Shown: positions 20,313 through 49,485 of the stretch, one piece after another
Layout of the letters: every line of letters begins with the position of its first letter
How positions within the stretch are numbered: position 1 is the first letter of the stretch
Origin: Rhodosorus marinus CCMP1338
Taxonomy: Eukaryota; Plantae; Rhodophyta
DNA: 64,000 nt
Direction: 5' to 3'
Assembly (NCBI GenBank): GCA_029953675.1
Contig: JAMWBK010000005.1
Location: forward strand, 930,001-994,000
The notes under the pieces: generated by a model
Database searches by the model: none
The model's input: the letters and a program-made list of their open reading frames with translations, nothing else
Told to the model about the DNA's origin: nothing
Translations under genes and position numbers: made by a program

Positions 20313-21307
20313 ATGAGGCGAGGAGTTTGTTTGAGCATTTTTCTAGCTTTTTCGCTGGTAGTTCTGGCTTCTGGGCTCGTCGTTGGGGGCGACAAGGCAG
20401 AGTCTAGATTGTCCGCGAAGCGAGTGGCCCTGAAGCAGTATGATGTCGTTCGTCAGACTACCGGAGGCACCTCGGGAGAAGCTGCTGAGGAGCCTGTGGA
20501 TTCGGCCGTAGAGTCAGGTGGGGAGACAGAAGTGGCAGATGAGGGCAGCGAAGATGACGGTGATGCCGCAGATGATATCGAAACAGGAGGTAGCGAGACC
20601 GACGATGATGATGAGGTTACTGACTCCTCTGAAGGGGACTTGGCTGATGATTCTGATGATGCAGAAGACGATACCGATGAGGATACCGATGATGATACCG
20701 ATGAGGATGACGATGATGGTGACGATAATGATGGCGATGATGGCAATGATGACGATGATGACGATGATGACGATGATGACGATGATGACGATGATGACGA
20801 TGATGACGATGATGACGATGATGACGATGATGACGATGATGACGATGATGACGATGATGACGATGATGACGATGATGACGATGATGACGATGATGACGAT
20901 GATGACGATGACATTGATGAGGACACCGATGCGAAAGAGTCTGACTCTCCAGACGATAACGAGGATGAAGACGATGAAGAGTCCACCGCAGAATACGAGG
21001 ACGAGGACGCGGACGATGGCAGCCCACAAGTTGAAGCTGCTGCTGCTGCCCCTAGTGCGACTCCAGCCCCAGACGAAGGTAAGCGGTTTCACCACGACGA
21101 ATCGCAGCACGCAGTACGGGACTGCGCATACGAGCATAGAAGCTAATAAACGTTTAACCATTTCCAGGGTCTGGCGCCTATGGAGTTAGCCCGTTGGCTG
21201 CATTGGCGGTGCTGGCAGTTGTTGTTGTACCGATCGTGGTCTATGCAGTTGTCAAATCAAGGTCTCCACAGGACCTAGTTCCCGTTGATGAATACGAGGA
21301 TATGTAA
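20313..21307 (+). CDS. Type-I membrane protein with Asp-rich ectodomain (exons 20313-21078 and 21168-21307)
   Basis: Signal peptide MRRGVCLSIFLAFSLVVLASG; D/E-rich region; an 89-nt intron (GTAAGC...GCTAAT...TTTCCAG); second exon gives TM 'PLAALAVLAVVVVPIVVYAVV' and tail 'KSRSPQDLVPVDEYEDM*'. Confidence 0.75.
20748..20912 (+). repeat. (GATGACGAT)n coding microsatellite encoding 55 consecutive Asp
   Basis: 165 nt of uninterrupted GAT/GAC codons with 9-bp periodicity, in frame with the ORF starting at 20313. Confidence 0.95.
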
Positions 21308-21595: not shown

Positions 21596-23049
21596 TTACT
21601 GGAACACATAAAATGTCAACGGACCTTCCATGCCATTAAAATTGTATCCTGAAGCCGCACACGTATATGCCCCCATGTCCTTCCACAATAGGAAGTCTCC
21701 AAGTTCCAGTTTCGGCAGTGGTATACTGCCATTCGGGGTGAGGTTGTCCAATCCATCACAAGTTGGCCCAAATACGATAGTGCCGTACTCGTGCTCGCCC
21801 CCTTTGACACTCGACGAAACAACGCGGAGAGGCTCTGCTTTCGGAACGACGTGGTCGTACAGTATGCAGTTGAAGGATCCGTAAACCCCGTCATCCACAT
21901 AGTACGTTTGTAGATTCTCCGGGTCCTTTGAGCCATCCCGTCTCGCGTAGATGCTGGTAAGCAGCGTATGCGTGGGAGCAGCAAAAAATCGACCGGGCTC
22001 CGCAATCACGTTGACGTGCCGCCCGATGCCGTCTTTTGCAAAATAGAAGCAAAGCGCTTGCCGGATCTTTGTAGCCATTTGCAGGTAGAGCTCGCTATCC
22101 AACTCACCGGGAAATCCTCCACCAATATCAAGAAGATTGAATTGGCTCATCCCAAGTCGGCGGGCTGCGTCGAAAACTGTCCTCGCATCTGCAATTGCCA
22201 GTTCGTACATGCATGGATCTGTGCATCCAGATCCAACGTGGAAGGAGACCCCCACGCAGTTCAGCTGCAGATTCTGAGCGTACTTCAATACCTGACCAGT
22301 GGAAAAAATAGCGGTTAGTAAAAATTGCCAGGGTCCGCCTCAGGAACCTCCGGGTGCCAATGATCGGTTTGTACCTCCTCTGCTCTCTTCGGAGCAAGTC
22401 CGAACTTCGCACTGAACCGACAAACGGAAGTGGAATCGTCAGTAGAGATGCGCAGGACGAGTTCCGCCTCTGGATAGAACTTCTTAATCTTGTCAAGTTC
22501 TGGTTCGTTATCAAAAGTCATCATTCTGATGCCGTGCTCTCTAGCCCACCGAATGTGATGTATCTTCTTACAGGGGTTTGCAAAGATGATTCGATCGCTA
22601 CTTATGCCCAATTTTATGATCGTGCGCATTTCGGAGAGCGATGCGCAGTCAAAATTGCAGCTCAGTTTGCCAAGAATGAACAGCAAGTTTGGATCCGGGT
22701 TGCATTTCACAGCGTAAAAAGGAGTAACCGATGGCAATTCTCGTGACCAGCGCTCATACTGATCATAGAGTCGACCCAGGTTGACCATGAAGAACGACTG
22801 AGAAAGTCCATGCTTTTTTATATGCATCATAGCAGCATCGTTCCTGTCCAGCGATGGTGGCAACTCTGTTATCCCGACGTCTCTGTCTCTCATCAAGTCA
22901 AGCACCACTCGGCGTCCGAGCGCCTCGCCTCGGCTTTCAACACGGTCATAATCTTTCGATCTTTCGTTCGATTCATCTCTAGTTGCGGAAAAGAATAACT
23001 CTCTGATTCCCGCAACAGGTCGTGAGAACACGAGTGTAGATTCCCCCAT
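21596..23049 (-). CDS. ODC1: Ornithine decarboxylase (exons 23049-22375 and 22291-21596; 456 aa)
   Basis: PFYAVKCN (PLP Lys), FDCAS, FHVGSG, LDIGGGF, EPGRF, FGPTCDGLD (catalytic Cys) and GAYT motifs. An 83-nt GTAC...CAG intron keeps the frame. First in-frame ATG at 23049. Confidence 0.93.
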
Positions 23050-23330
23050 CCAACAGCCCAAAGTAAGGATCAGACACTCAAAACAACAGCAGCAAGTTCC
23101 CAAATACCAATAATATAACCTCCTTCAGGAAGTTCAGGGCGCAATCTCGTCGCTCCGAAGCACGCCAGATGCCAGCGCAGAAACCACTGCTTGTTCTGGC
23201 CTCCAAAATCTGAACCCAAAGGAGTTGTTCAACTCCTCGGCGTGGGTGTTCGTCAAAAAAACAACGCTCTCGCCGCCCCGAACCCAGTCCTATTTGTACT
23301 CGCCCTTTCCCAAGTTCACCAGCAAAGTCC

Positions 23331-23390
23331 TCACCTCCACGGTGGCTCCCCCACCGCGGCTAATATTCCCCCTATCCGTGGTGAGAAAAG
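23331..23390 (-). promoter_or_regulatory. Candidate AUG-less upstream ORF ending in EPPWR* in the ODC leader
   Basis: Frame reads LFSPRIGGILAAVGEPPWR-TGA (stop 23333-23331). Near-cognate ATA (23375, 23366) and GTG (23354) codons are in frame. No ATG between 23648 and 23050. Confidence 0.6.
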
Positions 23391-23667
23391 CTAAACACAA
23401 AAGAAACCCCCCCCCCCAAAAAGGAAAAAAAGGGTATAAAACCAAAATCCTCCCCCGCTCCCCCTCCCCCTCCCCCAAAACGAAACAAGACTCTGGAACA
23501 AAAACCAAAAAAGAAAAAACCTGCCCGATCCCAAAAACAGATACAACACTCAGTTGTTAAAACTTCCCGCCCCTCCCGCCCCAAAAACCCTCCCCAACCC
23601 CACAATACTAAAACCCCTTACCGCTCCCACCTCCCTCCCCTCCCAAATCATCCAAACAAACTTCCCA

Positions 23668-23676
23668 CTATATATA
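23668..23676 (-). promoter_or_regulatory. Putative TATA box upstream of ODC
   Basis: TATATATAG on the minus strand within a G-rich region ~620 nt upstream of the ODC ATG. Confidence 0.35.
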
Positions 23677-26804: not shown

Positions 26805-29800
26805 TTAGAGTTCCTCCTTGTCCGCAACTTCTTCTTCTATTTCCGTATCATACTCCTCATTGGCAAAGTCGTCTCCCTCAAGATCAATACCGTCATCGTC
26901 ATCATCAGCGTCATCGCCGAAGCCCATCGGAATATCCCCAAAGTCGATCGGAACCTCCACCTTCTCCGGCTCATCGTCGTCGACTTTGGTCATGTCTGGC
27001 ATCGGCGGCTCCTCAAAGGTTGCGTTTGGATCCATTCCCAGAGTCTGCGCCATCAGCTTCGATATTCTGATGCCATGGTCAGTATGATCATGGAGGTAGT
27101 ATCCAGAAGCCACAAGCGCGGCATCGTACAGAACATTTATGATGTCCGCGGCTTTCTGCGACTGCGGATCCCTCTCGATGAGCATGTTCAACCCTTCCAC
27201 GATCGGATGATAGGGGTTAACTTCCATAACTTTCTGCTTTGGTACGGTTTGCACTGTATCAACAAAATCATGTTAAAAGTTGTCAGCTCAGATCACCGTG
27301 AAAAGATGGTGAAGGATGGGTTCATTACCCTTTTCGGGATTCGCCAAAGCCTGTGCTCTCATGACCGTCTCCATTCGCGCTGTGTATCCAAACTGCTCGG
27401 ATGATAACGCACAGGCTGATCTTGTGAGCTTCATCGACGCCCGGACAGAGCTCACCTTGTCGCTGCCGAGAGTTTCTTTCATGAACGTTAGGAGCGATTT
27501 TATGGACTGCCTCCCCCTCTTCGCCTTCGTACGAATCACTTCATCGTCCTCGGAACCCAGACGGAAGTTGTCCTTTGCAACAGCCATGAGCTTTGTGCCT
27601 TGGAACTCCTGGTAGTACTGCAGCAAGAACTCGTCCACGGGATCCACAAGATAGATGACTTCGTACCCCAAGTCCACCAGCTGCTCAGTGAAGGGAGAGT
27701 TCTTAACAGCATCCAGCGACTCCCCACTGTGGACGTAGATATAATCTTGGCCTTCCTTTGCGCGCAACATGTAGTCTTCCAGAGTCTAAGCGAAGTGAAT
27801 AGCCGCAAAACAACGAAGTTGTCAATACGAGCCGTGCCATAGCTCTTCCAAGGTCAACGCAAATATTTTGCTGGCTAACTTACGATAACATCATTGGGAT
27901 CCCTCAGTGCAGTCTTGGAGCTCTTGAAACGAACGATTTTCGCCAGTCTGTCTCGGTTTGCAACATCCTGAACCAGTCCCATCTTGAGTGTGGCTCCATA
28001 TACTTTCCAGAAACTGCACGGTGAGGAGTGAGATGCCAACCAGATAAGATCTCCGCCGACAAGGTCACAAATTGAACGTGCAAACTTACTCAAGGAACTG
28101 TGACCCGGGCTTCCGCGGATCATCTTTTTCTGGCTCATAAGGTTCCTTGTCCATCATAATCTTGATGGCCTCGAGAGCTTTGCGGAGCAGTTTCTTCTTG
28201 ATCGCGGTGAGACTCTTTGACTGCTGAAGTGTCTCTCGAGATACATTTATGGGGAGGTCATCCGAATCGACAATACCAACGATCATGGAGAGCCAAGCAG
28301 GGAGTAGACCATCTTCGACCGTATCTGTCACAAGCACTCTCCTTACGTAGAGCCTCACGAGATCCTTCCTCGTCTTCTCTTCCACGTGGGTTAGTGAACG
28401 AATCGGCTTCTTCGGGATATACAGCAACCCACGAAATTCGACGTCACCTTCAGCCTTGAAGTGAATGTACGTCAAGGGCTCCTGTCGTTTCGGAAGGATC
28501 AGGAACAGCATTAGAACGAAGTCTGTGAGAAACCAAGCCGACGACAATGATTTCGGATTCATAAGATCGTTCTCCTTGAAAACTCTTGGATGACCGCTTG
28601 CAAGCTTGCAGACGCACCTCATCAGTCTTGGCAATAGACTTGAAGAACGAAGTGTACTCCTCCTCGGAGATTTCCGACGGGTCCCGAGTCCACAAAGGTT
28701 TGACGTCATTGACAAGGCTCCAGTCGTACTTGGGAGGAGCTTCCTCCCCTTCTTTTCTTGTTGGATCCTCTTCTTCTGAAATAATTTCCTCATCATCTTG
28801 CTCAGCACCTTCCTCGTCCGTAACATCTTCGTCCTCCGGAGTCTCAGCGTCGACTTCACCATTAGTGCTTTCATCGCCCGTACCTGTATCAATGACTGCC
28901 CCTTCCTCTTCCTCTTCCGGTTCTTCCGGCTCTGGAACCTCCGGAACCTCCTTATAAACGTAGATTGGGAAGACAATGAATTCTGAATACCTCTTAATTA
29001 ACTCTTCCAATAGCCCAATGTCCAGATATTCAGCAGCATCTTCCTTCACTTCCAGAATGACCTTCGTTCCTCGTCCTGGCGGGCAGAGAGAAGGCATTAG
29101 CTTCCACGATCTTCGGGAGACATGTTGGCCTATGTTATTAATCTTACCGAGGGGTTCAGAGTCATCCTCCTTGATCGTAAAGCCTGAGTTTGTTTTGCTC
29201 GACCACCTCCATTGCTTTGGATCGTTATTGTTCTTGGATACGACCGTAATCTTGTCGGCCACGAGGAAAGCGGAATAGAATCCCACACCGAACTGTCCGA
29301 TGAGGTTAGCGGTGTCAGCGCCCCCCCCGGACTCGAGGTCCTTGGAAATTTGCTCAAGAAACGCGGAAGTTCCAGACTTTGCGATCGTGCCCAAATTATT
29401 GATCATGTCCTGCTTGGTCATGCCCACTCCACTGTCCTCCACCGTAATTGTTCTCGAAGACAGGTCGACTTTGATCTTGATATGTAGATCTTCTCCAGCT
29501 ACGAGAGCACTGGAATCAGTGAGCGCCTGAAACCGGATCTTATCGATGGCATCATTCGCGTTCGAGATCAGTTCCCTCAGAAAAACGTCCCGGTTTGAGT
29601 ACAACGAGTGGATCAGAATATCCATCAAACGAGTTACCTACAACATCAGCGATATCAAATGATAATGAGTTGACAGCCCAGCAAATCAAAACCCTCGGTC
29701 ACAAAAACTAATACCCGGTTGTTTGCACATACCTCAGCCTGGAACTGGAAAGTTTCCACTTTCCCTAAATCCGCCCTCACGGGTGACACCCCGCACACAA

Positions 29801-37912: not shown

Positions 37913-40589
37913 ACTCAGTCTGACGGAGGAGACGAGAACCCGCACGCGGAGCTCCCCTGCAACCTTCAGGAGCCTCCTCAACAGGTTTCGGAGTCTTCCA
38001 GCGATATGGAAGTCGAACAGGATGCGGAAAGGTCTACCACAGGCGACATCAGAGCCCTGAAGAAGCCGCGACAAGCCGAGACTCATTCACCATCACCTCG
38101 CGAACAGATATGAGTGCAGGTGACTCCCGGAAGAGACTGCGCACCACACCGTTGATCATCCGACCCAGGGGCATGGCAGCACAAACTGCTAGAGTTCCTG
38201 GAGACGCACACCGATTGGGGACAAAGTTGGTGGAAAGTTACCCACAGTCCAGTACGGACCCGGGAACATGTGCCGAATGCTCAGGCCAAGAAATAGAACA
38301 CGCTTCTGCACCAAGCCCTGGGATTTGCCCTCGACTCTGATGCTGATCCTTTTCTTCGCGCTTTCATCATGGTATTACCGGGTCTCGCGCTCGGAAAGTG
38401 CGATCTCCAGCCAGGAGTGCAAGTAGAACATCTCATGGAAGGGGAATTTTCGCAAGTATGGATGGCACTCAACGCGAAGACAGCGTGCCATCCCTCGGCA
38501 CGAGCGCGACGGGCCGATGGCCATGGGGAAAAACGTCGCAATGCGCAAGTAATTCGGTTGGCCAACGTTGGACGCCTTCCGCCGCAGCCCGGAGACTTGA
38601 GGCAACGGATCTCGCCCCTCTGAAACCATCTACCTGACAGGCTCTCCGAGAGCTTTTCCCCGCCGAGCCAACAACACCGCTACACGAGGAAGTGGAATTG
38701 GAGCTCCGACGTATCCACGAACAAGCCAACACACACCCTCCACGAGTGTGGAACCCCGCAGCAGCGAGCGACGAGTCCCTTCTCTCTGTGATCAACCGAC
38801 TTCCAGCCAAAAACGAGCCCCGGACCCAGCGGACTGCGAGCAGAGCATCTCCACGCCGTTACACCTGCGAATAAGCCCAGATTGGTTAAATTTCTGCGAC
38901 TCCTAGCGGGGAAGCCTGAGTCGTTCCCGTCCATACTCGGCAGGCCCTTCGTAGCAACCGGTTGCTTCCGTTTATCAAGCCACAAGCAGAAGGAGTGGCG
39001 GCTGAGGGACGCCTCCGACTGAGACCGCTTGCCGTTCCAGAGGTTCTGCGCAAGGTCGCTGCCCAGTTGGGTACTTGGCGGAATCTCGGGTCGACTAAGC
39101 GAGTTCCTAGTTCCGGAACAGCTGGGGATTGCCGTTCGGAGCGGATGCGAACAAGCGTTACACGCGGCACAGGCCCACCTCTACTACGAACCACAACACG
39201 CCTTGCTAAAACTGGACCTGGAGAATGCATTCAATAGGATTGACAGACGATTGGCGGCGCAAGTTGCCGCGGCTTCGTTTCCAGAGTTACTACCTATCTT
39301 CCAGCTCGCTTACGGCTCATGTGCGAATGAGGCTCCCATGCAGTTCGGATGGACAGAAATCGACGAAAGCGCTGGGAGAGTCAAAGACAGGCTTTATCTG
39401 AGAGCAAGCACTGGCGTTCAACAAGGAGACCCCGTGGGACCCGTACTTCACGCACTGGCCCTGGCCCCGTTCCTTCGGGCACTACGACGCAAGTTCCCAG
39501 AACTGACGCTGGCGGCAGTACACGACGACATTTCTCTGGTGGGTGATTTGAACGTGCTTAAAAGTGCTTTAAATTGGAGTGCAGAGGCACTAATCGGGAT
39601 AGGAGCGAAGCTACAGCGATCCAAATGCCTCATCTACGCACCGCGGCTGGACACACCACGTAGGATAAATGTGGATATGCCGGACATTCAGGTGACGCGC
39701 AAGGGGACTACCCTGTACTCTATTCCCATTGGAAGGCGCCAATACGCGGAGGCAACATGCAGGACCATCCAATCACGTCATGCAAAGCTCGTGAACGCAC
39801 TTCAACGTCTCCCAGAGTCGGAATTGCACGTTAAGTTAGCGATTTTCCGATACTGTGCGAGAACGCGACTTGACTACCATACCAGGGGCCTGGTGTATCC
39901 ACTGGGCCGGACCACCGCCAGGGAAGCCGACGGCATCACCCTTGCAGAACTGGAAGGCTTATGTGGAGGACAGAGACACCATCAAGATATCACCGGAGTT
40001 GAGGCAAACGTGGTGGAGCAGCAGATTCGACTGCCATGCCGATGGGGAGGGCTAGGGTTTGCTATGCGGACGAGGATTCAACCGGTCGGTTTTCACGCTG
40101 GTGGAAGCAGAGTCTTCAGGAGAATATCACTCAGTCCGGTTACCTTAGGCGGCTACTTTTGGACTGTATTTCGCTTGCGGATGGACATCAGCGGTGTGAG
40201 ATCAGTATGCAGTGGACTACGGGCGATCTGGCGGTGCAACTTGTAGCGGCAAGTCATGCGGTACAGAGGAGGCTATCACCAACGACGAGTGCACGGATCA
40301 AGAGGCTAGCGGAATGGCAACCATTAGCAGACTGTGCAAGAGGCACTGAGACGGATCCGACGAGTTCCGGAGGATATGACGGTCCCGTTCAAAAAACGCT
40401 CTCTCGAGAGTGCATCGTCACGCCTTCGAGATACTCACGGAGGATGCAACGGTGGAGGACGTAGACAGGGCAAGAATCCGGTCGGCGGCAGGGACGGGTT
40501 GTGGTGTATGGCTAAGAGACTGCCCTAACGTGGGTCCGCGGAAATTGAGTCGGGATGAGATGTTCTGGAGCATGAGGATGTTTCTGGGG

Positions 40590-45040: not shown

Positions 45041-46300
45041 CTACTCCTCAGCTGCGGGCGCGGCCTCTGGCTCAGTGCTCGCAGGAGCACTCTTAAAGCC
45101 GGCATACATTTCATTGGCATCCTTCCGGAAGCTGTCGAAGAGCTCCTGCCCGCCAACGGCGAGTTGCGGGTTAGCCGCCTTCGGGAGCGAGTCAACGACC
45201 TTGTTGACCATCGGCATCGCGGCGTAGATCTCCGCGTACGTCGTAGGTCCAGCAGCTGCGAATGCAGACTTCCTCGCCTCGAATTCCTGGTTCTTCTTCG
45301 TTGCGATGTCCTTCAGGCACTCCCTGTACGACGCAGTCCTCTGCGCAACTCTGACCTCCTCAGCTTGGCCCTTTGCGATTCCATCCTGGCAGTACGATCC
45401 GTAAGTGTCGTAAACTCCGTACGGTGTATTCGCTGAATTCGCTTCCATCTGCCTCATCCTGGCAATGTGCTCATCAGCCTTAGCCATGACCTGCTTCGTT
45501 CCAGGGTTCTTGTTGCACGAGGTGATCGCGTAAATTCCAGCGTAAGCAGGGCTAAACGGATACTCAAGCATACCAGCAGTCGACTTGCCCATGAAGTTGG
45601 GGGACTTCTTGAAGCTCTCGAAGTACTCCTGCGGAGTCATCTGCTTCATGATGTTGATCGCGTCTCCTGGGTTTCGGGTTGGCAGACTGTTCTCAACCTT
45701 GTTCCTCACACCCTGAGCGCAATAGAAGTCCCTCCACGTTACAGGGCCGGAGCTTGCAAATGCAGCCGCACGAGAGCTGTAGATCTGATTCAGCCTAACG
45801 TTCATCGGCTTCTGCGACTCCTTGAACGAGGCAGTCCTGCTCGCACCCCTCTTCTTCTCAGCTTCGAACTTGGACTGTCCGTCATGGCAGTACGTGCCGT
45901 AAGTCTTAAGCTCTCCGTACTTGTACTGGCAGTTGTTGACCATATCCCTCGCGAAAACAGCCTTGGCAAGGAACTCATCAGCCTTTGCCAGTACAGAGGA
46001 GATTCCAGGTCTCTTGTTGCAAAGGGTCAATGAGTGAACACCAGCCCACGCTGGGCTTGGCGGGTAGTCCAGCAGGTCCGCAGGAGAGCCCTTCCTTGTG
46101 TACTCAAAAGGCCTCTTCCCGACTTTGTAGTCGATCATAACCTTCCCGAAGCTCTGGTAATTCTTCTGGAAAGAATCAACCCTCATCGTGACGGTGCTGG
46201 AGTTGCTCGCCTGCCTCGTCCCAGCAACTCGCTCGCCGGCGAATCCTGAGCTCAGCTTCGGCTGAACGAACATGCCCCCGACAAACCCGAGATCAGCCAT
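45041..46300 (-). CDS. Phycobilisome rod gamma-type (LRgamma, phycoerythrin gamma-subunit-like) linker, paralogue 1 (419 aa, intronless)
   Basis: Transit peptide ending 'TVTMR'; 'DSFQKNYQSFGKVMIDY', 'YPPSPAWAG..S...C', 'GTYCHDG', 'QKPMNVRL' and 'CQDGIAKGQAEEVRVA' resemble red-algal gamma-subunit chromophore-binding domains. Confidence 0.85.
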   Translation of the reverse strand: MADLGFVGGMFVQPKLSSGFAGERVAGTRQASNSSTVTMRVDSFQKNYQSFGKVMIDYKVGKRPFEYTRKGSPADLLDYPPSPAWAGVHSLTLCNKRPGISSVLAKADEFLAKAVFARDMVNNCQYKYGELKTYGTYCHDGQSKFEAEKKRGASRTASFKESQKPMNVRLNQIYSSRAAAFASSGPVTWRDFYCAQGVRNKVENSLPTRNPGDAINIMKQMTPQEYFESFKKSPNFMGKSTAGMLEYPFSPAYAGIYAITSCNKNPGTKQVMAKADEHIARMRQMEANSANTPYGVYDTYGSYCQDGIAKGQAEEVRVAQRTASYRECLKDIATKKNQEFEARKSAFAAAGPTTYAEIYAAMPMVNKVVDSLPKAANPQLAVGGQELFDSFRKDANEMYAGFKSAPASTEPEAAPAAEE

Positions 46301-48111: not shown

Positions 48112-49485
48112 TTATTCGTCATCGGACTTCTCGGGTTCCGCGGCTTTGGGCGCAGGCTTCGGGGCCGGCGTCGGCGCCGCTGCCTTGGGGGCGACCCCGG
48201 TGCTAGTCCACATTGGCTTTCCAACAGGCATACCGCTTCTGAAGCTTTCGTAGTAGCTCTGTCCATCTTCCTTGATGTAGCTGTCCTGCAAGGCTTGGCC
48301 TGCATCGGTTGCCGACATTTGGAAACTCTCAAAGTACTGCTGTGAGTCGGCGGTCGAACGCGAGTTCGCCAGGGCGGTTTCAACCTTGTTCACCATCGGC
48401 ATCGCGGCGTAGATCTCCGCGTACGTCGTAGGTCCAGCAGCTGCGAATGCAGACTTCCTCGCCTCGAATTCCTGGTTCTTCTTCGTTGCGATGTCCTTCA
48501 GGCACTCCCTGTACGACGCAGTCCTCTGCGCAACTCTGACCTCCTCAGCTTGGCCCTTTGCGATTCCATCCTGGCAGAACGATCCGTAAGCGTTGTAAAC
48601 TCCGTACGGTGTATTCGCTGAATTCGCTTCCATCTGCCTCATCCTGGCAATGTGCTCATCAGCCTTAGCCATGACCTGCTTCGCTCCAGGGTTCTTGTTG
48701 CACGAGGAGATCGCGTAAATTCCAGCGTAAGCAGGGCTAAACGGATACTCAAGCATACCAGCAGTCGACTTGCCCATGAAGTTGGGGGACTTCTTGAAGC
48801 TCTCGAAGTACTCCTGCGGAGTCATCTGCTTCATGATGTTGATCGCGTCTCCTGGGTTTCGGGTTGGCAGACTGTTCTCAACCTTGTTCCTCACACCCTG
48901 AGCGCAATAGAAGTCCCTCCACGTCGCGGGGCCGGAGCTTGCAAATGCAGCCGCACGAGAGCTGTAGATCTGATTCAGCCTAACGTTCATCGGCTTCTGC
49001 GACTCCTTGAACGAGGCAGTCCTACTCGCACCCCTCTTCTTCTCAGCTTCGAACTTGGACTGTCCGTCATGGCAGTACGTGCCGTAAGTCTTAAGCTCTC
49101 CGTACTTGTACTGGCAGTTGTTGACCATATCCCTCGCGAAAACAGCCTTGGCAAGGAACTCATCAGCCTTTGCCAGTACAGAGGAGATTCCAGGTCTCTT
49201 GTTGCAAAGGGTCAATGAGTGAACGCCAGCCCACGCTGGGCTTGGCGGGTAGTCCAGCAGGTCCGCAGGGGAACCCTTCCTTGTGTACTCAAATGGCCTC
49301 TTCCCGACGTTGTAGTCGATCATAACCTTCCCGAAGCTCTGGTAATTCTTCTGGAAAGAATCAACCCTCATCGTGACGGTGCTGGAGTTGCTCGCCTGCC
49401 TCGTCCCAGCAACTCGCTCGCCGGCGAACCCTGAGCTCAGCTTCGGCTGAACAAACATGCCCCCCACAAACCCGAGATCAGCCAT
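48112..49485 (-). CDS. Phycobilisome rod gamma-type linker, paralogue 2 (457 aa, intronless)
   Basis: Nearly identical to paralogue 1 up to 'MPMVNKV', then a different, longer C-terminus. Confidence 0.85.
   Translation of the reverse strand: MADLGFVGGMFVQPKLSSGFAGERVAGTRQASNSSTVTMRVDSFQKNYQSFGKVMIDYNVGKRPFEYTRKGSPADLLDYPPSPAWAGVHSLTLCNKRPGISSVLAKADEFLAKAVFARDMVNNCQYKYGELKTYGTYCHDGQSKFEAEKKRGASRTASFKESQKPMNVRLNQIYSSRAAAFASSGPATWRDFYCAQGVRNKVENSLPTRNPGDAINIMKQMTPQEYFESFKKSPNFMGKSTAGMLEYPFSPAYAGIYAISSCNKNPGAKQVMAKADEHIARMRQMEANSANTPYGVYNAYGSFCQDGIAKGQAEEVRVAQRTASYRECLKDIATKKNQEFEARKSAFAAAGPTTYAEIYAAMPMVNKVETALANSRSTADSQQYFESFQMSATDAGQALQDSYIKEDGQSYYESFRSGMPVGKPMWTSTGVAPKAAAPTPAPKPAPKAAEPEKSDDE

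Follow-up and report, generated by a model that had tools for sequence, protein, structure and literature searches.

A deeply conserved hairpin element in the 5' leader of a red-algal ornithine decarboxylase mRNA, with a putative role in non-AUG upstream initiation

The stretch of Rhodosorus marinus CCMP1338 DNA analysed here (the window; 64,000 nucleotides (nt) of contig JAMWBK010000005.1, assembly GCA_029953675.1, positions 930,001 to 994,000) carries on its minus strand a gene for ornithine decarboxylase (ODC), whose long 5' leader contains a short hairpin element. This element is part of the mature mRNA, is deeply conserved and probably throttles ODC synthesis. Joining exon 1 (22375..23049; all coordinates refer to the minus strand unless marked otherwise) to exon 2 including the stop codon (21596..22291) yields a protein of 456 amino acids that is identical to KAJ8904739.1 of the same strain, an entry whose source is this very contig and assembly (PMC10250338). 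The intron in between (22292..22374; 83 nt) has GT...AG borders and a TACTAAC branch site. Both Pfam domains PF02784 and PF00278 are present in the spliced model, which matches mouse and human ODC with E=1e-102 and antizyme inhibitor with E=1e-65, and which retains the pyridoxal phosphate lysine K69, the active-site cysteine C360, GGGFPG and the other catalytic motifs. An earlier sequence-only reading of this DNA had called the gene a catalytically intact red-algal ODC, and rightly so, since the ODC matches beat those to antizyme inhibitor and the catalytic motifs are kept. The C-terminus (...FYVFQ, then stop) directly follows the catalytic domain, without a tail of the vertebrate degron type. 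At the other end, a lineage-specific N-terminal extension of about 85 amino acids, beginning with MGESTL, is kept in Bangiopsis, Purpureofilum and the third lineage introduced below.

For comparison, five sequences from three independent lineages were available. Rhodosorus is represented by the window and by two further strains, namely an MMETSP transcript with spliced coding sequence (L001; ODC 93% identical, leader of 566 nt) and a transcript that retains the ODC intron (L010; leader of 417 nt). The second lineage is Bangiopsis sp. CCMP1999 (L002), again with a transcript spliced in its coding sequence and an ODC that is 60% identical; the ODC intron is absent from both the L001 and the L002 transcript. 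Logan genomic contigs (L012/L013) stand for a third, stylonematophyte-like lineage, which shares 57-63% identity in ODC exon 1 with each of the others. Two Rhodosorus protein entries deviate from the model: P0124, from the intron-retaining L010 transcript, ends with ...AEEVQVDR, and P0123 of MMETSP0315 starts with MTVLKA..., its N-terminal region being read in another frame, which points to an indel or assembly difference.

Upstream of the coding sequence, a likely TATA box (TATATATA; 23669..23676) can be read directly, and the 5' end of the L001 transcript maps 22-29 nt downstream of it, at window position 23647; a comparable TATA box (GTATATAAAG) lies ahead of the L012 leader. According to the L001 alignment, the ODC leader comprises about 598 nt (23050..23647), is rich in G and T and is free of AUG. 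Between about 23647 and the ATG, the L001 transcript follows the genome with small indels only; the leader therefore has no intron and the segment 23331-23390, in which the element resides, stays in the mature leader, as judged from the CDS-spliced transcripts L001 and L002. Two splicing events considered by the sequence-only reading, one from a donor at 23621 to an acceptor at 23391 and one from a donor at 23334 that would remove a stop codon, are consequently not used. The same reading had described the region 23648-23050 as lacking ATG. This statement stands, the minus-strand ATGs being located at 23651 and next at 23049, but the ODC start is 23049 and not 23050. With the L001 5' end at 23647 and the TATA box at 23676-23669, the ATG at 23651 lies at or before the inferred transcription start; it is therefore probably not transcribed and was set aside.

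The leader contains no ATG at all, compared with 4.5 expected (P=0.008; 0.8% of 2000 dinucleotide-preserving shuffles of the 598-nt leader), and ATG depletion recurs in all five leaders (each P<=0.02 in the shuffle test), a pattern that fits a long leader scanned by ribosomes. Ordinary AUG-initiated upstream open reading frames (uORFs) occur singly in two of the five leaders and at non-homologous positions, i.e., downstream of the element in L001 (leader positions 369-464, ATGCTAGGG...) and upstream of it in L002 (76-123, ATGGGAGTGGGC...); the window, L010 and L012 have none. A second, weaker conserved stretch is situated directly 5' of the ODC AUG (23050..23164), with 79-80% identity among the Rhodosorus strains versus 51-59% in the neighbouring leader. 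The context of this AUG, UUGG-AUG-GGGGAA, is common to the window and Bangiopsis, and AUGGGGGAA is also found in L012; with its U at -3, the context counts as weak by general eukaryotic standards.

The frame that had attracted the sequence-only reading lies 282 nt upstream of the ODC ATG, in agreement with the spacing of about 280 nt given there. Read from 23393 to 23331, it begins with an in-frame TAG, continues with CTT TTC TCA CCA CGG, ATA (23375), GGG GGA, a second ATA (23366), TTA GCC GCG, GTG (23354) and GGG, and ends with the Glu-Pro-Pro-Trp (EPPW) codons GAG CCA CCG TGG (23348-23337), AGG and TGA. The region 23390..23331 thus encodes LFSPRIGGILAAVGEPPWR before the TGA, contains no AUG and has its near-cognate codons exactly where they had been located. 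A distance of 33 nt separates the first ATA from the second Pro codon (CCG, 23342-23340) downstream. With respect to chance, the sequence-only reading had put the probability of EPPW at 7e-4; the motif is indeed improbable, but the estimate was about three to four times too optimistic, as EPPW arises in 0.25% of 2000 dinucleotide-preserving shuffles of the 598-nt leader and Pro-Pro-Trp (PPW) in any frame in 2%. Conservation is a stronger argument than such motif statistics.

Within Rhodosorus, the frame is embedded in a conserved island of 117 nt (23290..23406), which is 96% identical to L001 and 95% to L010. Among the same strains, identity amounts to only 51-59% in the flanking leader and 91-93% in exon 1, and since the island is thus better conserved than coding sequence, neutrality is excluded. 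Towards its 3' end, the part from 23290 to 23330, which extends for about 40-50 nt past the PPW-frame stop, shows one substitution in the three Rhodosorus strains, with no recognisable conservation in Bangiopsis or L012. Immediately 5' of the island, the leader is strain-variable and dominated by long G runs and GGGGGA repeats (23407-23470; G 37%, T 32%).

Across lineages, conservation narrows to a core of 45 nt, composed of CACCACGGAT(A/T)GG, a spacer of 11 nt and GCCGCGGTGGGGGAGCCACCGTG, outside of which the leaders of Bangiopsis and L012 are unalignable with that of the window. The core is kept where ODC itself is only about 60% identical. Its first part, block 1 (CACCACGGATAGG; 23371..23383), follows the pattern CACC-ACG-G-AUA/U-GG, CACCACGGAT being invariant in all five sequences. 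The spacer (23360..23370) differs in sequence between lineages and among Rhodosorus strains, yet shows no indel. The second part, GCCGCGGTGGGGGAGCCACCGTG, is an exact match of 23 nt between the window and the Bangiopsis ODC leader; a 16-nt core, GGTGGGGGAGCCACCG, is identical in L012 as well and hence invariant in all five, and it occurs a single time in the 64-kb window. When metagenomes were scanned with the back-translated pattern ATHNNNGCNGCNGTNGGNGARCCNCCNTG, seven matches were obtained, all on high-GC bacterial contigs without ODC, which marks them as chance matches.

PPW itself is not conserved, an outcome that the sequence-only reading had named as counting against its proposal. Glu-Pro-Pro is invariant in all five sequences and the hairpin, read in the AUA frame, gives VGEPP throughout, but the next residue is Trp in the three Rhodosorus strains, Cys in Bangiopsis and Gly in the third lineage. 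The stop codon is found 1 (Rhodosorus), 10 (Bangiopsis) and about 47 (L012) codons past this residue, corresponding to 2, 11 and about 48 codons from Pro-Pro, and the frames end with PPWR and PPCALQSTLTV, each followed by stop, in Rhodosorus and Bangiopsis and continue as PPGFFVF... in L012. In the spacer, the four codons vary without apparent restriction, most changes being non-synonymous (GGIL, VGIF, GGRL, GFIE, GDNA). Amino-acid conservation accompanied by synonymous change, which the sequence-only reading had proposed as the mark of a functional PPW, was looked for with a negative outcome: the lineages agree in every base of the conserved codons. The window and Bangiopsis use the same codon at each of the ten conserved places of the element, for which P=1.5e-5 if they had diverged like the ODC coding sequence, where 42.5% of the codons at identical residues are the same and synonymous sites are saturated. 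The sole synonymous changes are ATA to ATT at codon 6 (Bangiopsis) and ATA to ATC at codon 9, a non-conserved residue (Ile/Arg/Asn). The lack of synonymous change in conserved codons argues for selection on the RNA sequence, which forms a hairpin, and on the present alignment the conserved unit is a set of nucleotides and not a peptide.

These data bear directly on the proposal of the sequence-only reading, i.e., an AZIN1-like PPW region defined by its peptide only, whose function depends on the Trp and the nearby stop but not on RNA structure. PPW-R-stop is identical in the three Rhodosorus strains, and a PPW with a stop within four codons turns up in only 0.45% of the shuffled leaders (n=2000). 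Nevertheless, Trp gives way to Cys and Gly, the stop shifts by 9 to about 46 codons, the conserved codons show no synonymous variation and the PPWxxPS-stop ending of animals is missing; this version is already contradicted by the comparative data. It is further weakened by the change from Trp to Gly, which covaries with the opposite stem position as described below, and we consider it hardly credible.

The invariant 23-mer coincides with a hairpin of 9-11 bp, termed hairpin A (23337..23359; CCGCGGUGG, GGGAG loop, CCACCGUGG), which is part of the minimum-free-energy fold of all five sequences with -17.1 to -18.3 kcal/mol and whose GGGAG loop is invariant. In the folds of Rhodosorus (z=-2.4) and L012 (z=-3.3, 0/200 shuffles), it tops a longer irregular stem. 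Changes in the stem preserve pairing: in L012, G at position 3 of the 5' arm is replaced by U and its partner U by G, turning a G.U into a U.G pair. The partner is the initial U of the Trp codon (UGG), which makes up the last 3 nt of the stem, so that GGG at this place in L012 pairs with the compensating change in the 5' arm. A neighbouring C-G pair becomes U.G in L012, and an extra closing pair is present in L012 (A-U) and Bangiopsis (G-C). Overall, 94% of the cells are paired, two pairs are changed on both sides, with one covarying pair within the stem proper, and covariation at this level arises in 22 of 500 column shuffles. With only three independent lineages, covariation is suggestive, not conclusive. 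A competing fold, "structure B", in which block 1 pairs with the 5' arm, was rejected as not conserved, having -17.8 kcal/mol in Rhodosorus, -3.0 kcal/mol in L012 and no covariation.

Two invariant blocks at fixed spacing, with CCGCGG being palindromic, could in principle also represent a protein-binding site at the DNA level, e.g., a bipartite transcription-factor site located in the leader. The exchange of G.U for U.G, however, keeps pairing in the sense-strand RNA only, and the element is found at varying distance from the presumed transcription start (about +270 in the window and about +200 in L012). We regard a DNA-level element as very improbable, and the same applies to conservation without function, with which an identity above that of the coding sequence is incompatible.

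Hairpin and reading frame are interlocked in a particular way. In the AUA frame, third codon positions of one arm pair with second codon positions of the other, e.g., GCC3-UGG2, GCG3-CCG2, GUG3-CCA2, CCA3-GUG2 and CCG3-GCG2. Selection on the peptide alone would permit synonymous drift, and selection on the stem alone would permit compensatory drift and loop change, whereas both constraints acting jointly would freeze the sequence, which fits the observed invariance.

The degree of invariance could also reflect recognition by a factor. The hairpin might act as an operator comparable to an iron-responsive element (IRE), with stem, GGGAG loop and possibly block 1 being bound and scanning thereby blocked or permitted, without any upstream translation. 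The 16-nt core, including loop and wobble positions, is invariant despite saturated synonymous sites in ODC, which exceeds the need of a generic hairpin; the boundaries of the invariant block are those of the hairpin; and a positive signature of peptide selection is missing among the five sequences. On the other hand, a hairpin of -17 kcal/mol at about 290 nt from the cap does not block scanning by itself, and an operator would leave unexplained why the near-cognate codons keep a constant spacing of 17-21 nt and why the ACG has a strong Kozak-like context. There is also no known binding factor, and the Rfam 15 covariance models assigned no family to the leader, the sole match being at chance level and elsewhere in the leader (E=6.5). 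Taken together, such an operator appears unlikely, but clearly less so than a DNA-level site.

The constant spacing refers to two near-cognate codons in block 1. ACG (23379-23377), embedded in CACC-ACG-G, is preceded by A at -3 and followed by G at +4; the first stem nucleotide is at +21 in all five sequences. AUA (23375-23373; AUU in Bangiopsis) has C at -3, with the first stem nucleotide at +17, again in all five. Of the three frames, only that of Pro-Pro is free of stops across the core in every sequence compared, and its sole conserved in-frame start is AUA/AUU (AUA/AUA/AUA/AUU/AUA), the better-context ACG 4 nt upstream being in a different frame. Starting from AUA, the candidate uORF of the window (23331..23375) comprises 14 codons plus the UGA stop and would be translated to (M/I)GGILAAVGEPPWR; from AUA/AUU through Pro-Pro, the frame is open in all five. 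For structure-assisted near-cognate initiation, a window of +17 to +32 with an optimum of +20 to +26 and a threshold of about -15 kcal/mol has been reported, ACG starts being described as an exception that is enriched for stable downstream structures, and an earlier figure by Kozak of 14 nt between codon and hairpin is cited in the same study (PMC11165317). At the sequence level, the element falls within these limits in all five cases, with -17.1 to -18.3 kcal/mol and distances of +21 (ACG) and +17 (AUA/AUU). The 7 long open reading frames (ORFs) of the window are too few to derive a Kozak consensus for Rhodosorus.

Three further candidates in this region were rejected. A GCCACC-GUG-G start within the 3' arm has a perfect Kozak appearance, but the GUG is GGG in L012; GUG 23354 (codon 13) lacks a conserved context as a start; and for an antizyme-type +1 frameshift at AGG-UGA, the downstream frame is not conserved.

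Given its context and position, the ACG might be the start that is actually used. The hairpin would then promote initiation at ACG and lower or gate access to the ODC AUG, and EPP/PPW would be merely CCACCGUGG read in an unused frame. The ACG-frame uORF of the window (23290..23379) comprises 29 codons plus stop, (M)DRGNISRGGGATVEVRTLLVNLGKGEYK, and its TAG (23292-23290) marks the 3' end of the Rhodosorus island. Several observations speak for this option: the five sequences share CACCACGG unchanged, the favourable context (A at -3, G at +4) goes together with a distance of +21 within the published optimum, ACG starts are the very class enriched for stable downstream structures (PMC11165317), the island ends where the frame ends, and the one substitution further downstream, which turns GTG into GTA in L001, leaves the ACG-frame peptide unaltered. 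The ACG-encoded peptide, however, is not conserved between lineages; it extends over 32 codons in Bangiopsis, where the C-terminus is dissimilar, and over 4 codons, followed by TAA, in L012. As this TAA precedes the hairpin, the frozen hairpin sequence cannot stem from ACG-frame coding there. Moreover, a link to polyamines would be restricted to their general stimulation of near-cognate initiation. We rate a uORF in the ACG frame as unlikely too, about on a par with the factor-binding operator.

We favour, with some reserve, the broader proposal that a hairpin-assisted non-AUG uORF, in whichever frame, lowers ODC translation. In its full version, this uORF would additionally contain a functional eIF5A-dependent Pro-Pro pause, by analogy with the upstream conserved coding regions (uCCs) of animals and fungi; to this reading we assign a tentative probability of roughly 40%. 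This figure and those behind our wording for the alternatives do not sum to one, and the remainder of the broader proposal overlaps with the ACG-frame uORF.

Translation of a uORF, the frame used, pausing at Pro-Pro and polyamines as the signal are all features that we infer, and they could be linked as follows. The 43S complexes scanning along the long AUG-free leader would be slowed by the stable hairpin of -17 to -18 kcal/mol. With the hairpin base fixed 17-21 nt past ACG and AUA/AUU, one of these near-cognate codons would be held in the P site and initiation would occur at low frequency. Ribosomes starting at AUA/AUU would melt the hairpin and read Val-Gly-Glu-Pro-Pro-(Trp/Cys/Gly), where Glu-Pro-Pro-X would need eIF5A; EPP, PPW and PPG are listed as eIF5A/EF-P-dependent pause motifs, PPC is not (PMC5499558, PMC13602936). 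High polyamine levels, which interfere with eIF5A at the AZIN1 uCC (summarised in PMC8705083 and PMC10855120), would impair its action here too and thereby cause a pause on Pro-Pro. The second Pro codon being 33 nt from AUA, i.e., about one ribosome length, the paused ribosome could replace the hairpin as roadblock and hold the next scanning complex on the weak start. More uORF initiation would leave fewer ribosomes for the ODC AUG 280 nt downstream, resulting in negative feedback on putrescine synthesis. At its boldest, this scenario implies that the same 23 nt are used twice, first as a hairpin recruiting ribosomes to AUA/AUU and then as a Glu-Pro-Pro-X polyamine-sensing pause, that a single stalled ribosome sustains initiation, and that the element is an unusually compact uCC, representing a fifth independent origin of such polyamine-sensing regions in ODC mRNAs and the first for ODC in Archaeplastida; in this combined form, the proposal is rather doubtful.

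Several points weigh against the Pro-Pro pause reading. The five sequences, belonging to three lineages, are its whole comparative basis, and among them no pattern of synonymous or conservative-only substitutions points to peptide selection. The Trp is not conserved, and the Bangiopsis motif PPC is absent from the listed strong motifs. Both the position of the stop and the length of the uORF vary, with 14, 21 and about 59 codons counted from AUA/AUU. With C at -3, the AUA makes a poor start, and the ACG with optimal context and optimal distance is out of frame. In addition, two third positions in the loop and the wobble-tolerant sites are unchanged, beyond what peptide and stem together would need; this surplus conservation keeps recognition by a trans-acting factor a live alternative. 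Finally, the model offers no explanation for the near-invariance, in Rhodosorus, of the 51 nt that follow the PPW-frame stop. Irrespective of the mechanism, the element is present in the mature mRNA and deeply conserved, and its hairpin, its constant spacing and its invariant EPP are real.

In animals and fungi, ODC is restrained by antizyme, a C-terminal degron and upstream coding regions. As a deeply conserved element that bears the hallmarks of non-AUG upstream translation, the leader element would offer a concrete, testable entry point to red-algal polyamine homeostasis. If the Pro-Pro pause reading is true, it would in addition be another convergent origin of proline-based translational sensors, and a natural case in which a hairpin and the peptide it encodes are both functional, explaining the complete freezing of the sequence.

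Other features of the window lie apart from the ODC leader. Convergent to the 3' end of ODC, an ORF of 277 amino acids (20313-21146, plus strand) has a signal-peptide-like start, a very long run of Asp codons and no Pfam match. At 28450-29625, an N-terminal segment of the HSP90 family is encoded (PF00183, HATPase_c), and a weak, sub-threshold reverse-transcriptase match at 39338-40246 (plus strand) might be what is left of a retroelement. Two paralogous ORFs in tandem (45041-46300, 419 amino acids; 48112-49485, 457 amino acids) share their first 25 residues (MADLGFVGGMFVQPKLSSGFAGERV) and a near-identical upstream context; neither has a Pfam match.

Among known regulatory systems, the IRE and its regulatory protein (IRP) offer the parallel of a small leader hairpin with invariant loop and stem in the mRNA of a metabolic enzyme. 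IREs, however, act near the cap, whereas the hairpin described here lies about 290 nt from the presumed 5' end and matches no Rfam family. The uORFs of S-adenosylmethionine decarboxylase (AdoMetDC) mRNAs, comprising the mammalian MAGDIS and the tiny and small uORFs of plants and algae, likewise combine an mRNA of the polyamine pathway with a short upstream peptide that has a proline near its end. In contrast to the present element, they start with AUG, are defined by their peptide, act at termination and contain no hairpin.

A downstream hairpin reportedly aids initiation at an upstream start codon, as put forward by Kozak in 1990. With this concept and with the START elements, the stylonematophyte element has in common a near-cognate codon, a strong context and a stable hairpin at +17 to +21, within the published window and threshold (PMC11165317). 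It differs in that not just the stability but the sequence of the hairpin is frozen and in that two candidate starts in different frames share one hairpin.

The closest comparison is that with the uCCs, which occur in the leaders of ODC homologues in animals, Pezizomycotina, Basidiomycota and Zygomycota, are thought to be independent with at least four origins, use non-AUG starts, span 22 to 100 codons and almost always contain two adjacent prolines (PMC2811004). The animal uCC ends with PPWxxPS-stop (PMC10855120), and for AZIN1, a polyamine- and eIF5A-dependent pause at PPW with queuing has been summarised (PMC8705083; PMC10855120). The red-algal entries in the uCC survey are confined to AdoMetDC uORFs (PMC2811004), and our literature search found no case of an ODC upstream coding region for red algae. 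Differences to the uCCs are apparent: the Rhodosorus element is conserved at the nucleotide level, with no sign of peptide selection, no PPWxxPS-stop and a variable Trp; Pro-Pro is near the C-terminus only in Rhodosorus; the AUA/AUU start has a poor context; the Pro-Pro codons coincide with part of an invariant hairpin; and the distance from start to pause is a single ribosome length, versus a queue of about five in the uCC. Since neither coding conservation nor the PPWxxPS-stop ending is found, we do not file the element as a uCC member. Shared features are, nonetheless, the position in the 5' leader of an ODC-family gene and in the mature transcript, the AUG-free sequence with near-cognate starts only, the invariant Pro-Pro, the short length, similar to the 22-codon uCC of Zygomycota, the PPW in Rhodosorus and the expected logic of negative feedback by polyamines, in which eIF5A-dependent pausing and queuing would increase initiation at the weak start. 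On paper, the element thus resembles a uCC, and with it Rhodophyta, here the Stylonematophyceae, would be new to this type of control for ODC.

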